A DNA stretch of 63,911 bases, counting the filler, from Pelomyxa schiedti (Eukaryota; Protista; Evosea), in the NCBI GenBank assembly GCA_020536535.1. It is 14 parts of 14 records of this genome, joined end to end, with 100 filler letters (N's around TTAATTAATTAA, not from the genome) between each part and the next. Parts side by side here need not be neighbours in the genome. Positions count along the whole stretch, not along the records: positions 49,321 to 61,329 come from JAHLWZ010001227.1; 13 more parts are not named here. One strand, written 5' to 3'. Position numbers and translations under genes: made by a program. Shown piece by piece: positions 49,321-55,427 of this stretch. A model generated the notes under the pieces. That model saw nothing but the letters and a program-made list of their open reading frames with translations, had not been told where the DNA came from and searched no databases. How positions within the stretch are numbered: the first letter of the stretch is position 1; each line of letters begins with the position of its first letter.

Positions 49321-52305
49321 CGACTGCATACAAGGACGACGTGAGTTACATTGGTTCGCTCATCGAGCAGGTCCGCTCAGGCAACGCCGACGCGATGTAC
49401 GACCTCGCCAACTGCTACCTCGAGGGCAGCAACGGCGTCGCCAGGGACCGCGGCCAAGGCGCGGCGCTGATGCAACGCGCCGCCGACGCAGGCAACGCGG
49501 CGGCCATGCTGGCCCTGGCCTGGGCCCACTACAGGCCTCCCCCGCCCCCGCCCCCCGGCGGCCGCGTGCTGTGGGCGAGGGACCTCGACGCGGCGCAGCG
49601 CTGGTTCACGATGGCGCGCAGCGGCGCCGGCCTGTACAACGTCGGGTGCGACTACTACTACGCCGGCGCCGGGGTGGAGCGCGACGCGGACAAGGCCGTC
49701 GCGCTGTGGGCAAAGGCTGCCGACCTCGGCGAGGAGCTCGCGATTGTGCAGCTCGGGTGGTGCTACCAGCACGGCGTGGGGGTGCAGCGCAATCCAAAGA
49801 AGGCCGTGAAGCTGTACAATGACGCCATCGGCCTGGACGACTGCCATTCGTGGAGGCTTGGTGTGTGCTATCTGCGCGGCGAGGGCGTGAAGCGCAACGT
49901 CACAATGGCTGTGAAGCTCTTTCGGTCGATCACCGACGCAAACGCACAGGCATACCTTGGGTGGTGTTACTTGTGGGGTGGGGGTGGCATCGAGAGGGAT
50001 GTGGCAAAGGCCGTGGCCCTGCTGAGAAGTTCTGTTTCGGTGCGTGGAAGGAAGGAGGTATTCCTTGGGTATTGTCATGAAACTGGCGTTGGTGTTGATC
50101 AGGACACAGCCAAGGCTCAAGAGCTATACAATGCTGGAAAGCATACACCAGAAGGTGCAGAGGCCCTTGGGGAGCTGGGAGTGTTTTGTCAAAGGGGTGA
50201 TTGTGGTGCACCAGTAGATAAGAGGATGGCTATTGGATATTTCAGGATGGGTGCTGAATCTGGTGATCCAATTTCAATGTTTCACCTTGGTGCGTGTCTC
50301 AAGGATGGCAATGGTGTTGATTGTGACTTGGAACAGTCACGACACTGGCTGGGGAAGGCCACTCAGTTGGGGCACAAAGGGGAAGTCATGTCCCAGGCAA
50401 TACCAAAAAAAAAAGGTGTCATCGATGCATTGCAAAAAGAAGTGGAGTCCTTGCAGATGGAGGTAAAAAAGAAGAATGAACAAGTAAGTGCTTGGCGATT
50501 TCCTTTCCATTACATTGATGTTTGGCAGCTTCTAAGAAGCGAAAGGACACAGGAAGACACTGCCAAAATCAACTTGGAGATGTCATCTATCAAAGAGAAA
50601 CTGCCTGAGAGCTTTCCCGAAAATTACGAAGTATCCAAAAAAAAAGTTGTGAATGATTCGTTCACCCCATCAGGACACTGTAAACACAATGACTGCACTT
50701 ATACCAGCGACTGCTGACGATTTTAGGGTTGAGAAACTCCTTGGTACTGGGTCAAACTCAGTGGCGTTTGAAGTCTGTTATCTCCCACGTTCTGCCATAT
50801 CTCCAAACCAAACAGGAAAGAACATGGTGATGAAGGTAGTTTTCAACTGGGAGAACACACCACGGCAATCGTTTCTGAGGCAGAAATACATGGCTGAGTG
50901 TGTGATCCTCTCATTGGTTCCACCTCACCCAAATGTGATTCACCCTCTTGGCACATTGGTACTCCCTTGGTACATTTCCCTTAACATACAATGCATTACA
51001 CTCACATTGTCACAGCCTCACAAATGCATTTGTTGAGAAAATACCTACAGACCAACCATATTTCCGGGAGTTGTGCTCCAACAAGTCATTGGCCATCCTG
51101 ATGCCCCACTGTGGCATCACCTTGCCTTCCTTCCTCTCCTCATTAAGCATGGAGGACAAGAAGACAGTTGAGGTGGTACACAACCTCCTCCTTCAAGGAC
51201 TCAAAGCCATTGTGCACATTGAGTCACAGTCCATTGTCCACAGGTTTGTGTTGGGGCCTGGTATTTCTCAAATAAAACACACAGAGACATCAAGGAAGAC
51301 AACATTCTTGTTGACCCAGAAAGTGGCGACCTGACACTGATCGACTTTGGGGAAGCTGTGCACTGCCTGAACACCAACCTTGAGATGGCAATTTCCTCCA
51401 TAACACAGCCCTGGGGCAATGCAGGAACAATTCCACCTGACCTGAGCATCTTCCTCCGGAGTATGAGGAGTGGAACCAGTGGTGTGTTCTCATACTCGAA
51501 GTGTGACTCTTTTGCACTTGCCCTCACCTTCTGGGATGCTCTCTTACCCCCAACCAACAAGTTCATTGGGACCTTGGACTGTGACACAAGTGCATTCACC
51601 ACCCAGGCACTATGCACTGAGTTCCCTCTAAACCAATTGTTATCTTCAGAACAACAAGGCAGACTGCTGGAAACAGTGATGATTGGAATGATGGAACCTG
51701 ACAAGGCAAAAAGGCTCTCTGCCTCTGATGCAATCTCAAGGCTTCAGGGTGCCACAACCTCAATGCTTCAGGGTGCTGCAACCTCGGGGCTTCAGGGTTC
51801 TCCACCAACAATCCAATCTCTCCTTTCGACTGTTACTAATTACACAGTTGAAACACTCCTTGGAACTGGTGCAAGTTCAGCTGTTTTCAAGGTACAAAAC
51901 TGTACAACAACAAGCAGCAGCGGCAAATTGTCATCACCATCAACAACAGCAGTGGTGAAGAGCTATGTGGTGATGAAGGTCCTTTTCAACTGGGATGACA
52001 CATCACAGACAATGCTGAAGCAGAAATACATGCATGAGTGTCAGATACTCTCATTCGTTCCACATCACACAAATGTAATTCATACTCTTGGGGACCTTGT
52101 AGTCCCTTGGTATGTTATCTGATTGGGTCATTTCACACCCACTTCAGGTCAAAAGATTTTTTTTTCACAACCCACAGCCTTCCAGCAGAGTTTGTGGAGA
52201 AGATACCTGCAGATCAACAATTTTATCGAGAACTGTGCAACAACCAGTCACTTGCCATCCTCATGCCTTATTGTGGGATCACTTTGCCATCATTCTTATC
52301 TTCCT
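49321..52305 (+). CDS. Sel1-like repeat protein with coiled coil and two tandem PINK1-like Ser/Thr kinase domains (both ends truncated)
   Basis: About 8 SLR units (AMYDLANCYLEGSNGVARD, QLGWCYQHGVGVQRNPKKAVKLY, SMFHLGACLKDGNGVDCDLEQSRHWL). Kinase 1: LGTGSNSVAF, VMKVVFNW, PPHPNVIH, VHR|DIKEDNILV, LIDFG, WGNAGTIPPD, YSKCDSFAL. Kinase 2 starts ~51835 and is cut by the gap. Confidence 0.85.
51741..51810 (+). repeat. 24-bp coding tandem repeat x3 in the inter-kinase linker
   Basis: GCTTCAGGGT units encode LQGATTSM LQGAATSG LQGSPPTI. Confidence 0.8.
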
Positions 52306-52453
52306 NNNNNNNNNNNNNNNNNNNNNNNNNNNNNNNNNNNNNNNNNNNNNNNNNNNNNNNNNNNNNNNNNNNNNNNNNNNNNNNNNNNNNNNNNNNNNNN
52401 NNNNNTTTTGGTGCCAATGATTACGATTGCACGATGCCACTGTGTTTTTGTTT

Positions 52454-53629: not shown

Positions 53630-54579
53630 TCAGATGAGTTGTAAGAAATGTATTACCAGGAATTCCGGTGGTGTGTGGCAATGACGAAACTGTGGACAAA
53701 TTTGAATATACTTGGTGCCATTTGAATGGAGACCTTTGTAAAATCTTCTCTGGGGAAGAGTGAGGTGAGAAGTGTGAAGTGTGAAGTGAGAGAAGTTATT
53801 GGATGTGGATTGCACCCAGAGGACTGTTGTGTTTGAATTTTGATGTTATAAATAGAAAAATATAATTAATATGTGTTGCTAATTCTGTGCAAGATGTATA
53901 TACCACTGAGACAGATTGGAAATCGATTTTGCTCCACAAACTGGCGAACCAAGCCATATGGCTGAAACTGATCATACCTGAAAATAACGATTGAAATGCA
54001 AGTCATGGTTAACTGGTGCAGTAGTAGTATAGTGCAAATGTTGGTAGGAGAGCGCTTGTTTATTCGTTGGGAGGAAGGATATATACTCTCGCCTTTCGTG
54101 CAACATCAAAGAATAATTGTCATTCGAAAATGAAGATAACAACTCCTTGTCAGTATAAATCCATTGGTAAAATTCGTCAGCATCCGTTTCAGTCTCTAAC
54201 TGTGTGTGGGTATGTATTTTGTGTTGGTTGGTGGTATTCTCACACACACACTTAGAGACTAAGTCAACATATATAAACAAAAGAAAAGTCAAGAAGAACC
54301 TCAAAACAAAGATGTGATGCCCACTCCAGGCAGAAGTGCCAGCACAAGATCCTGTTCACATTGACCTCTGATGTTGCGTACCACTTTTCAATCAGTGTCT
54401 GTGCAATAATTTTCCATGTGATACTGTCTGGGGAATCATGTGAGTGTCCGAGAAAGAAAGAAAGAGTGTGTAGTATTTACAAACCAGGATAAAGATCTCT
54501 CCAGTGGGTGTAGTCTTTGGGCTGTGCCCAAACATACACCATGCGGCGCACTGCCACTCCATAAATATCAGATACTGGT

Positions 54580-54672
<93 letters not shown>

Positions 54673-55427
54673 TTACTCAAATATTAGAATTGGAATATCT
54701 TCTGGAGTGTGTGTTTGGTGGCAGAGTTGGAGAGAAAAAGAATAAGGATGATGATTGAGCGAGCAGTTTTGTGTCCTCACGATAATCCAGAGAAAGGAGT
54801 ACATGCCACCCTTGGAGTGGAGCTGAATGCCACAATGACTTTGTTACTGCTGCCACTACTACTCCCAGCAGTCCCGGGCCCTTCCATTTGTTCTCCTCCT
54901 GTTCCTTTTTTTGTCACAGGACGGGCAGCGGCAGAAGTGGCAGCGGCAGGGATGATTCCGAAATCCAACAAGCACAAGTGAGCCCAAAGAGAGTCGCAAC
55001 ACTCCTGTGTGTGACAAATGCAATTGTGAAGTGCTTTGCATGTGACCGCAAGTCGTTGTATTTCCTTCCCGTTCAGGTTCCTGTGTAAAAACATCAAAAA
55101 ATTTCCACAAANNNNNNNNNNNNNNNNNNNNNNNNNNNNNNNNNNNNNNNNNNNNNNNNNNNNNNNNNNNNNNNNNNNNNNNNNNNNNNNNNNNNNNNNN
55201 NNNNNNNNNNNAATTTCCACAAATTTTTATGACAGAGAGAGAAAAGAGATGTGAGTGCGCGTGCGAGTGAAGTGAGTTTAGCGACTGCGCCAACTCACCA
55301 ACGAACGAACTCACCTGCAGATTGCCAGCAACACTTGAACATCTTCGCAACAAAACAACAACAAACAACACCCATCTCCATCATCGCGGGTCCTGTGACA
55401 ACCACGGCTACCACGACGCTTCATCAT
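53630..55427 (-). CDS. F-box protein, multi-exon, spanning the 100-N gap; 3' end uncertain
   Basis: EDVQVLLAICR|NLNGKEIQRLAVTCKALHNCI..DSLWAHLCLLDF is an F-box-like pattern, with downstream WRDLY. Confidence 0.55.
54585..54668 (+). repeat. (TG)42 dinucleotide microsatellite (intronic)
   Basis: Seen directly in the sequence. Confidence 0.97.

Follow-up and report, generated by a model that had tools for sequence, protein, structure and literature searches.

A Sel1-repeat protein with tandem PINK1-like kinase domains from a large kinase family of Pelomyxa schiedti

Structure of the gene and its product

The window analysed here is a stretch of 63,911 nucleotides joined from parts of the genome of Pelomyxa schiedti (Archamoebae), one of which is the entire 12,009-bp contig JAHLWZ010001227.1 (assembly GCA_020536535.1). 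At the left end of this contig lies a gene of six exons and five GT-AG introns of 41 to 68 nt each, whose product carries eight Sel1 repeats followed by a coiled-coil-like linker and a pair of kinase domains in tandem, K1 and K2 (Table 1). The closest relatives of this product are, without exception, other P. schiedti proteins. In the public annotation the gene product is P0017 ("sel1 repeat family protein"), whose splice sites are identical to those that we inferred; we used this public protein as the spliced product and handled the last K2 exon, which lies outside it, separately. Splicing and expression were judged from the annotation and from homology to paralogs, the four sequencing runs being genomic contigs from one sample.

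Table 1. Coordinates of the gene, its exons and introns, and the kinase domains, counted along the window
Feature	Position	Strand	Content and basis
Sel1-kinase gene	49323..52305	+	six exons, five introns
exon 1	49323..50483	+	eight Sel1 repeats (~49323-50363) and start of linker; Pfam Sel1, P0017 match
intron 1	50484..50528	+	45 nt, GTAAGT...CAG, between codons; absent from P0017 (...KKKNEQ/LLRSER...)
exon 2	50529..50630	+	remainder of coiled-coil-like linker; P0017
intron 2	50631..50673	+	43 nt, GTATCC...CAG; P0017 reads ...PENYE/DTVNTMTALIP...
exon 3	50674..50969	+	K1 N-lobe: glycine loop GTGSNS, beta3 Lys in VMKVVFNW, alphaC Glu, HPNVI
intron 3	50970..51015	+	46 nt, phase 2; splits the Cys codon of LVLPC/L
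exon 4	51016..51243	+	~25-residue beta4-beta5 insertion, beta5 (SLAILMPHCGITL), alphaD, alphaE, to H-R of HRD
intron 4	51244..51284	+	41 nt, phase 2; within the Arg codon of HRD
exon 5	51285..52109	+	K1 HRDIKEDN, DFG, WGNAGTIPPD, YSKCDSF, alphaI; Q/G/S/T-rich linker; K2 N-lobe (GTGASS, VMKVLFNW, HTNVI)
intron 5	52110..52177	+	68 nt, GTATGT...CAG, phase 2; place and phase equivalent to intron 3 of K1
exon 6	52178..52305	+	3' end cut by gap; K2 insertion-3-like segment, beta5 (LPAEFVEKIPADQQFYRELCNNQSLAILMPYCGITLPSFLSS); tblastn with paralogs
assembly gap	52306..52405	.	100 N; conceals the remainder of K2
K1	50674..50969, 51016..51243, 51285..~51750	+	complete, all catalytic motifs
K2	~51800..52109, 52178..52305	+	N-lobe, then exon 6; only Lys and Glu of the catalytic set visible

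An earlier note on this DNA had described Sel1 repeats and two tandem kinases, and both are present on the same strand; its description needs correction in that the gene has five introns, K2 is incomplete, and some N-terminal codons are missing. The annotated ATG is at 49395 and the frame stays open to the contig edge; because the reading frame is open at the contig's left end, a few codons are lost there, only about 5 to 15 as judged from the N-termini of paralogs. K2 is incomplete because of the 100-N gap that follows exon 6, and the public annotation stops earlier still, running into intron 5 and terminating at 52122. Contigs of the sequencing runs extend K2 beyond 52305 into an alphaE-like stretch, and a search for the rest of the domain downstream of the gap within the contig recovered no kinase-like sequence. 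The reading frame appears to shift near 50631-50673 because intron 2 lies there; of a frameshift at an A9 run (50637-50645) and a 43-nt intron, the former was rejected. The intron is removed in P0017, and the genomic contigs of the four runs contain no indel at this place. The contig also carries a ROCO-like gene 3.4 kb further downstream.

The Sel1 array matches Pfam PF08238 over exon 1 in eight stretches (172.6 bits, where the cut-off is 30.7; E 6.4e-52), which places the protein among the Sel1 repeat (SLR) proteins, a group with tandem repeats of ~36 to 44 residues. The linker preceding K1 is charged and coiled-coil-like, its exon 2 segment being 52% E/K/Q/R/L, and paralogs have similar linkers immediately N-terminal to the kinase. 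Outside the kinase core, no 19-residue window of the available sequence (which lacks the first codons) has a hydropathy like that of a transmembrane helix, and the highest value, 1.43, falls in kinase strand beta5; because there is no transmembrane segment, the label "receptor-like" that had been given to this protein is not supported. No mitochondrial targeting sequence was found, in agreement with what the earlier note had proposed; the first codons being absent from the window, this was judged together with complete paralogs, which begin 10 to 20 residues ahead of the first Sel1 repeat and lead straight into it. The gene product is thus predicted to be a soluble protein.

Likeness of the kinase domains to PINK1

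K1 retains all of its catalytic residues, with the beta3 Lys in VMK, the alphaC Glu in AEC, HRDIKEDN, and DFG, and Pfam Pkinase matches P0017 with an E-value of 1.3e-17. An AF2 model of K1, built from an input alignment that included PINK1 sequences, has a pLDDT of 93.4 and Z scores of 25 to 26 to kinases (a model from a 13-sequence family alignment reached a pLDDT of 55 and was not used). These motifs and the modelled bilobal fold are those of a eukaryotic protein kinase and predict an active Ser/Thr enzyme. The motif pairs of K1 and K2 are LGTGSNSVAF and LGTGASSAVF, MKVVFNW and MKVLFNW, HPNVI and HTNVI, and LAILMPHCGITL and LAILMPYCGITL; with WGNAGTIPPD and YSKCDSFAL in the C-lobe of K1, every kinase motif quoted in the earlier note is present. 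The two domains are 49% identical in the N-lobe and 76% identical in the insertion-3-like/beta5 part; at the DNA level, K1 and K2 are 70% identical. The N-lobe identity of 49% and the occurrence of tandem kinases in other paralogs indicate that the tandem is an old arrangement.

Among kinases of known structure, PINK1 (Other/NKF2; PDB 6EQI, 7T4K, 7MP8, and 9EIH) is nearest in sequence, whichever direction the search takes. When K1 alone was compared to the PDB, the best 12 distinct sequences were all PINK1 (E 2e-11 to 3e-8, 177 residues aligned), followed by PIM1 (E 1.8e-7) over 50 residues; the alignment to PINK1 is 3.5 times as long as that to the next family. A profile of the Pelomyxa family recovered PINK1 from the PDB with 60 bits (E 2e-15) and TTK/PIM1 with 46 bits, a margin given as 13 bits. 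In the reverse test, K1 reached 115 bits with the PINK1 HMM, whereas generic kinases had a median of 52 (a gap of ~60 bits). A scan of 1.84 billion protein representatives returned PINK1 orthologs as the first named family outside Archamoebae; the first full-domain matches past Archamoebae and Trimastix bear PINK1 motifs, and two are named Pink1 by their sources. Exon-by-exon searches of Pfam and the PDB gave weak matches only, the N-lobe exon alone recovering LIMK1 (E 0.7) and no PINK1. The E-values of the K1 and family-profile searches put the PINK1 resemblance that the earlier note had suggested beyond chance, and of all kinases with a solved structure PINK1 comes nearest to the kinase domains.

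The resemblance extends to particular elements of the fold. PINK1 and K1 share K-x-x-F-N-Y/W after the beta3 Lys, HPN[IV]I, HRD[IL]KxDN[IL]L, a GN..[AP]PE activation loop, Y[ST]K[AC]D, and M[LM]xxDPxxR, as well as a glycine loop without the third Gly, a variable beta2-beta3 loop at the place of insertion-1, and a beta4-beta5 insertion of ~25 residues at the place of insertion-3. This last element is similar in length to insertion-3 of PINK1 and aligns with it in HMMER, with IP, N-x-SL, and then LxxLM..C.L..FL in common, and contains two short helices in the AF2 model (model residues 100-116); of the Arg-Asn pair of PINK1 insertion-3, the Asn is kept and the Arg is replaced by Ser in K1. The P-loop Cys of PINK1 is likewise replaced by Ser. 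The autophosphorylation site of PINK1 lies 9 residues past the beta3 Lys (Hs Ser228/Ph Ser202); around the corresponding place both domains have Thr at +8, followed at +9 by Pro in K1 (NWENTPRQ) and by Ser in K2 (NWDDTSQ), and the Thr at +8 is found in most paralogs.

It is unlikely, in our assessment, that the protein is instead a generic, fast-evolving, lineage-specific kinase ("Other" or TKL-like, as in amoebae) whose PINK1-like motifs are convergent or retained from an ancestor. Identity to PINK1 is only 20 to 26%, and structural searches do not by score alone set PINK1 apart from other kinases: the best matches of the AF2 model are PINK1, with 286 to 306 residues aligned (306 with 6EQI) against 258 to 266 for CDK2, VIA Z scores of PINK1 and CDK2 differ by less than 1 Z unit, and the Foldseek E-values of PINK1 grade without a break into those of FGFR, TGF-beta receptor, and CaMKII. 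In total score, the best PDB PINK1 chain (60 bits) is also exceeded by more than 150 cluster representatives, with 71.7 bits at rank 150, but most of these totals add up several weak domains of 30 to 40 bits each. The single-domain matches of at least 70 bits outside Archamoebae, by contrast, side with PINK1 in the tree described below (except P0130, which groups with the controls), and many of them bear FNY, GGN..APE, or Y[ST]K[AS]D. The 13-bit margin, the longer aligned stretch, the gap in the reverse test, and the presence of an insertion in the same loop as insertion-3 all speak against such an origin.

The tree was a quick reconstruction with only nine control kinases, all from one hit list, and an unresolved backbone, in which a branch of support 97 parts eight of the nine controls (together with one unnamed match) from the other 67 rows, which comprise a PINK1 clade, a metagenomic/sponge clade, and an Archamoebae clade. 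Profile searches in both directions, the signature motifs, and this split support classification of the domain as a PINK1-like (NKF2-like) kinase in the wide sense.

A Pelomyxa family beside PINK1

At least 60 paralogs are present in Pelomyxa, a count that the earlier note had called for as a check. Their kinase domain is combined with Sel1, ankyrin, Ras/Roc, MORN, VWA, CNH/Vps39, and SH3 partners, and the Sel1-kinase order recurs in ~19 of them. Other paralogs also carry tandem kinases; the second kinase domain of paralog P0015 lacks DFG (IGFG), so that a tandem of this kind can include a pseudokinase. No paper in the library searched describes PINK1 in Archamoebae, Sel1-kinase fusions in amoebae, or the Pelomyxa family, which by this measure is an undescribed PINK1-like family. 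The proposal of an undescribed signalling module stands to this extent; as a one-off it does not, given the Sel1-kinase paralogs and a gene already deposited in GenBank.

Divergent PINK1-like kinases, all uncharacterised, are found in Mastigamoeba balamuthi (P0069/P0071), Trimastix marina (P0051), Gefionella okellyi (P0126), Sycon ciliatum (P0105), and a metagenomic clade, and they share the wider PINK1-like group on the same side of the 97 branch. The Mastigamoeba and Trimastix proteins form one clade with divergent Pelomyxa paralogs (support 92). These protist and early-animal kinases score 99 to 115 bits against the family profile, compared to 300 to 820 for full-domain core Pelomyxa members, and none has the full FNW/WGN/YSKCD signature.

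Phylogenetic comparison with PINK1, another check that had been proposed, put the Pelomyxa proteins on the PINK1 side of the 97 branch, but as their own clade (support 100) within the Archamoebae and Trimastix clade and separate from the metazoan-type PINK1 clade (support 91). As one of at least 60 such genes, the gene is therefore not a PINK1 ortholog, and its product is placed by sequence in the separate Pelomyxa clade. Compared to the single PINK1 gene, with elements as listed in PMC8828467, the Pelomyxa protein has a Sel1 solenoid and coiled coil at its N-terminus and two kinase domains in tandem, and it lacks the MTS, OMS, and TMD. The N-helix and C-terminal region (CTR) are absent: K1 ends at alphaI, K2 follows after a linker of ~25 residues, and single-domain paralogs end within ~10 residues of alphaI. 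Insertion-2 (alphaC-beta4) is also absent, alphaC passing directly into HPNVI.

These differences bear on the improbable alternative that the gene encodes the functional PINK1 of Pelomyxa, a Ser65 kinase of ubiquitin or a ubiquitin-like protein that guards the mitochondrion-related organelle, with Sel1 repeats in place of the import-based sensor. In its favor, searches in both directions give PINK1 as the closest characterised kinase, the insertion with its conserved Asn sits at the insertion-3 site, a Thr or Ser lies near the Ser228/Ser202 position, and P0042, a divergent Pelomyxa relative, carries the GenBank name "PTEN induced putative kinase 1." The metazoan-type PINK1 clade moreover contains no Pelomyxa sequence, and therefore the entire Archamoebae clade could be co-orthologous to PINK1. 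Against it, the size of the family and its varied N-terminal modules fit poorly with a single organelle-surveillance gene, the elements listed above are missing, and the family forms a clade of its own. Reviews list PINK1 as absent from anaerobic protists (PMC9796589, PMC6759080), and the related amoeba Entamoeba is reported to lack both PINK1 and Parkin (PMC9796589).

An assembly artefact or dead gene, in the form of a chimeric single-cell join of Sel1 and kinase parts or a collapsed or duplicated repeat, is highly improbable: the genome does come from single-cell amplification (PMC8887013), two 100-N gaps lie within the 12-kb contig, many paralogous contigs pile up on conserved motifs, and composition changes strongly in exon 1 (GC3 up to 1.0 in the Sel1 part and ~0.45 in the kinase part), but the GC3 shift is gradual within one unbroken Sel1 reading frame, one run's contig covers 49679-50405 with zero differences, K1 and K2 are only 49 to 76% identical in protein and 70% in DNA, and both the Sel1-kinase order and kinase tandems recur in paralogs. 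A bacterial-amoebal join at the GC-rich 5' part was rejected on the same gradual change and on paralog P0019, whose exon 1 has the same GC3 hump on a 25-kb contig with ordinary eukaryotic neighbors.

Possible functions and significance

Our preferred reading, to which we assign a probability of roughly 0.7, is that this nuclear gene, nearly complete at the locus, encodes a soluble Ser/Thr kinase of several domains that is a distant relative of PINK1 and a member of a Pelomyxa family of at least 60 genes. The catalytic domain of this family has been combined with many interaction modules by shuffling. The Sel1 solenoid may bind a partner or position the enzyme, and the linker may join two chains. 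The kinase domains would be activated in the manner of PINK1, by autophosphorylation in trans, perhaps on the conserved Thr/Ser 8 to 9 residues past the beta3 Lys, and the active enzyme would phosphorylate cytosolic substrates. A ubiquitin-like substrate is possible, and ubiquitin kinase activity would be a purely hypothetical property.

Parts of this architecture have counterparts elsewhere. ROCO/LRRK-type families (e.g., the Dictyostelium Roco kinases) follow the same logic of one kinase type joined to many repeat and GTPase modules (ankyrin, Ras/Roc, and LRR-like) with lineage-specific expansion, although the kinase subfamily differs (TKL for ROCO) and the Sel1-kinase gene has no Roc-COR module. 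Two kinase domains per chain are also found in RSK/MSK, in the JAK pseudokinase-kinase, and in plant tandem kinase proteins, with P0015 resembling kinase-pseudokinase pairs; those families are unrelated, whereas both Pelomyxa domains derive from one PINK1-like family. In eEF2 kinase, SEL1-like helical repeats that bind substrate or regulators accompany an alpha-kinase, but there the catalytic fold is different, the repeats are C-terminal, and the catalytic domain is single.

In the usual view, PINK1 is an animal ubiquitin kinase that is encoded by a single gene and bound to mitochondria. In P. schiedti, an anaerobic amoeba whose organelles are reduced, at least 60 soluble kinases have a catalytic domain most similar to that of PINK1, with an insertion where PINK1 binds ubiquitin, and are fused to many targeting modules. 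The host lacks canonical mitochondria and has anaerobic mitochondrion-related organelles instead (PMC8887013). A further and rather improbable reading is that the family consists of kinases of ubiquitin or ubiquitin-like proteins freed from mitochondrial import control, which swappable Sel1, ankyrin, and GTPase modules aim at different cellular targets; one of these could be the vacuoles that house the many prokaryotic endosymbionts of Pelomyxa. If that were true, phospho-ubiquitin signalling would be older and broader than PINK1/Parkin mitophagy and would survive without canonical mitochondria.

As a compact domain with a confident model (pLDDT 93), K1 is amenable to direct expression and assay. 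If the Pelomyxa kinases are ordinary signalling kinases, they add a lineage-specific branch to the kinome tree, and the PINK1-type domain would predate animals. Should ubiquitin-like proteins be substrates of some of these kinases, it would become possible to test outside mitophagy how phospho-ubiquitin signalling arose.

Likeness of the kinase domain to PINK1

At the sequence level, the PINK1 likeness of the window kinase holds in both directions. Searched against the PDB, the first kinase domain (K1) found PINK1 from Tribolium, Pediculus, and human in all 12 of the best 12 distinct sequences (E = 2e-11 to 3e-8), with 177-residue alignments that start at HPN, take in the beta4-beta5 insertion, HRD, DFG, and the activation loop, and end at YSKxD; PIM1 ranked next among the families (E = 1.8e-7, 50 residues around the catalytic loop). 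A profile of 13 paralogs likewise scored 60 bits against PINK1 (E = 2e-15, whole domain) versus 46 bits for TTK/PIM1. Against 1.84 billion representatives, the same profile recovered 53 proteins with E <1e-30, whose sources, where looked up, were all Pelomyxa save the Trimastix protein P0051 (two further ones were multi-domain sums), followed by divergent proteins of Pelomyxa, one from Trimastix marina, and two from Mastigamoeba balamuthi. Below these came single-domain matches with IKMLFNY, HRDLKSDN, GGNxALMAPE, and Y[ST]K[AS]D, including a Hydractinia protein labeled Pink1-like and one labeled "PTEN induced putative kinase 1"; many of the higher total scores were sums of several weak domains of 30 to 40 bits each. 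In the reverse test, an HMM built from nine metazoan-type PINK1 domains gave K1 115 bits, compared to medians of 99 for the family and 52 for generic kinases drawn from the same set of matches. In the alignment, K1 and PINK1 share a K-x-x-F-N-W/Y motif, a variable beta2-beta3 loop, a GN..PPE loop, YSKxD, and M[LM]xxDPxxR, and K1 has an insertion of ~25 residues at the PINK1 insertion-3 site, followed by SL..LM..C..L..FL. Forward searches, reverse HMM, and aligned motifs thus agree with the earlier note that the kinase domains are PINK1-like.

The predicted structure is in keeping with the PINK1 link, but it is not decisive. The AF2 model (pLDDT 93.4, pTM 0.91) was built on a 66-sequence alignment that included PINK1 sequences. 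PINK1 accounted for 16 of its 17 top Foldseek matches, with E-values grading continuously into other kinases, and VIA-align gave nearly equal Z scores to PINK1 (26.4 to 25.5, 286 to 306 residues aligned) and CDK2 (25.5, 258 to 266 residues); this continuum and the near-equal CDK2 score are therefore why we read the structure as fitting rather than deciding.

Relation to PINK1 and the Pelomyxa family

By sequence, the window gene is not PINK1, nor an ortholog in the usual sense. When 76 domains were placed in a maximum likelihood tree (quick search, SH-aLRT support), the 25 rows of the core Pelomyxa family formed a clade (100) nested in one of Archamoebae and Trimastix (92); PINK1 of metazoan type (91) and a sponge/metagenomic group (99) form separate clades. 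The tree has a polytomy as its backbone, and a branch with support of 97 sets the three clades against eight of nine control kinases and one unnamed match. The whole Archamoebae clade may be co-orthologous with PINK1. The 99-support clade of PINK1-like kinases (P0088, P0091, P0093, P0095, P0098, P0099, P0102, P0103, P0105, P0122, P0131, P0139, and P0150) carries the motif GGNxAH[LI][AP]PE and comes mostly from metagenome or Logan contigs, plus one sponge protein (Sycon ciliatum).

Of the PINK1 elements described by Gan et al. (MTS, OMS, TMD, N-helix, insertion-2, insertion-3, and CTR; PMC8828467), the window protein has an insertion-3-like segment only. The claim that it has no mitochondrial leader stands insofar as no MTS is present in the protein, but the gene's own first ~5 to 15 codons are missing from the contig. 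PINK1 dimerizes and trans-autophosphorylates a Ser 9 residues past the beta3 Lys, whereupon insertion-3 becomes ordered; at this site K1 has Thr (+8) and Pro (+9), and the second kinase domain (K2) has Thr-Ser. In the insertion-3 Arg-Asn pair, to which the 6EQI paper reportedly assigns a role, Asn is retained and Arg is replaced by Ser in K1.

The K1 search recovered 51 P. schiedti proteins of 467 to 1,487 aa, besides 13 shorter ones from an earlier search. Depth spikes of run contigs over the conserved motifs fit with many paralogs. Family kinases are fused to Sel1 repeats (~19), ankyrin repeats (~14), Ras/Roc domains (4), MORN, VWA, CNH/Vps39, and SH3 modules. Tandem kinases recur in P0015, P0016, P0175, and P0011; the second domain of P0015 (residues 422 to 670), with IGFG for DFG and HRDIKESS for HRDIKxDN, is probably a pseudokinase, which would mean that the family includes kinase-pseudokinase pairs. 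P0042 (KAH3764091.1), a Pelomyxa protein of 362 aa that GenBank calls "PTEN induced putative kinase 1", falls among divergent Archamoebae sequences outside the metazoan-type PINK1 clade and begins with a coiled-coil-like segment in place of a targeting sequence. The kinase at the C-terminus of P0051 (1,491 aa) belongs to this group and scores 115 bits with the Pelomyxa profile; the protein's source, Trimastix marina, is another anaerobe with reduced organelles.

Gene model, architecture, and contig

The gene lies on one complete contig of 12,009 bp, JAHLWZ010001227.1 (49321-61329, assembly GCA_020536535.1), and its close protein relatives are P. schiedti proteins in every case. This anaerobic archamoeba, sequenced by single-cell genomics, has mitochondrion-related organelles and, according to its genome paper, 7.4 introns per gene, of which almost all are GT-AG (PMC8887013).

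Features of the contig and the window gene
Feature	Position	Strand	Details
Exon 1	49323-50483	+	DNA and frames
Exon 2	50529-50630	+	DNA and frames
Exon 3	50674-50969	+	DNA and frames
Exon 4	51016-51243	+	DNA and frames
Exon 5	51285-52109	+	DNA and frames
Exon 6	52178-52305	+	DNA and frames; cut by gap
K1	P0017:403-734		beta3 Lys, alphaC Glu, HRDIKEDN, DFG all present
K2			GTGASS, VMKVLFNW, alphaC Glu, HTNVI; past intron LPAEFVEKIP...LAILMPYCGITLPSFLSS, then gap
Assembly gap, 100 N	52306-52405		JAHLWZ010001227.1
Annotated gene, 498 aa	52454-54887	-	abundant S/T/P/H low-complexity runs
Assembly gap, 100 N	55112-55211		JAHLWZ010001227.1
Annotated neighbor gene, 1,423 aa	55669-60392	+	weak COR-A and weak kinase matches

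The six exons are separated by introns of 45, 43, 46, 41, and 68 nt, all five GT-AG. The locus is present in four public runs, all genomic contigs from one sample, and in no RNA run; the model derives from the DNA and its reading frames. P0017, the public product (850 aa, "sel1 repeat family protein"), has identical splice sites and differs at its ends alone: its first codon is the ATG at 49395, with the frame open as far as the contig edge, and it reads into the last intron to a stop at 52122 because the following exon is cut by the gap. Paralog N-termini (e.g., MAATKRHADDSNSSYVGSLVEQANAGN...) agree with the upstream frame (...SYIGSLIEQVRSGNADAM...), which therefore leaves only ~5 to 15 codons beyond the edge; contigs from the four runs reach ~1.3 kb further upstream of 49321 (records of 1,531 to 1,535 nt, ending at 49558), and the raw data therefore hold the missing start. 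A frameshift near an A9 run was rejected in favor of the 43-nt intron, the genomic contigs of the four runs having no indel there.

Exon 1 encodes eight Sel1 repeats (Pfam E = 6.4e-52), followed by a charged linker of ~60 residues (E/K/Q/R/L, 52%); comparable linkers directly precede the kinase in paralogs. Exon 1 also has a strong GC3 hump (49413-50130), at 0.9 to 1.0 over 49413-49772 and falling gradually to 0.3 to 0.4 beyond 50043. A chimera was rejected as its source, given the single Sel1 frame throughout and the same course (0.6 to 1.0 to 0.33) in the first exon of P0019, a paralog on a different contig (L001, 3001-4107); the hump resembles a 5' GC gradient or the outcome of biased gene conversion between Sel1 paralogs.

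K2 starts ~25 residues beyond K1, and run contigs carry 32 nt more of it past 52305 before matching the alphaE region of K1 at ≥90%, so K2 continues in the real genome. An assembly duplicate was rejected, because the two domains share only 49% N-lobe identity and 70% DNA identity, with an intron at the identical codon and phase; judged from these comparisons, the tandem is old. Beyond the kinase core, no stretch of the protein reaches the hydrophobicity of a membrane helix, so it is soluble, contrary to the earlier description as receptor-like.

Downstream, the 498-aa gene had zero Pfam matches, and a long (TG)n microsatellite lies within its span at ~54560-54680. A 742-aa exon of the neighbor gene matches COR-A (E = 0.004) and kinase (E = 0.017), both weakly, and the gene's end carries HPNIVKF... 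and ...EPTNRPTVKQLL; the gene probably encodes a degenerate ROCO/LRRK-like kinase.

Novelty and proposed working

The window gene is already in GenBank, under generic automatic names only, and the literature searched held no mention of PINK1-like kinases in Pelomyxa or Archamoebae; according to reviews, Entamoeba and Monocercomonoides lack PINK1 (PMC9796589, PMC6759080). Ubiquitin-like proteins are possible, if improbable, substrates. Taking the domain content and catalytic residues, which are observed directly, together with steps drawn from PINK1 and the modular pattern of the family, we suggest that the window protein is most likely a cytosolic signaling kinase, in which the Sel1 solenoid would bind partners or place the enzyme, the charged linker would pair two chains, and the PINK1-like domains would, once activated by trans-autophosphorylation, phosphorylate substrates in the cytosol.
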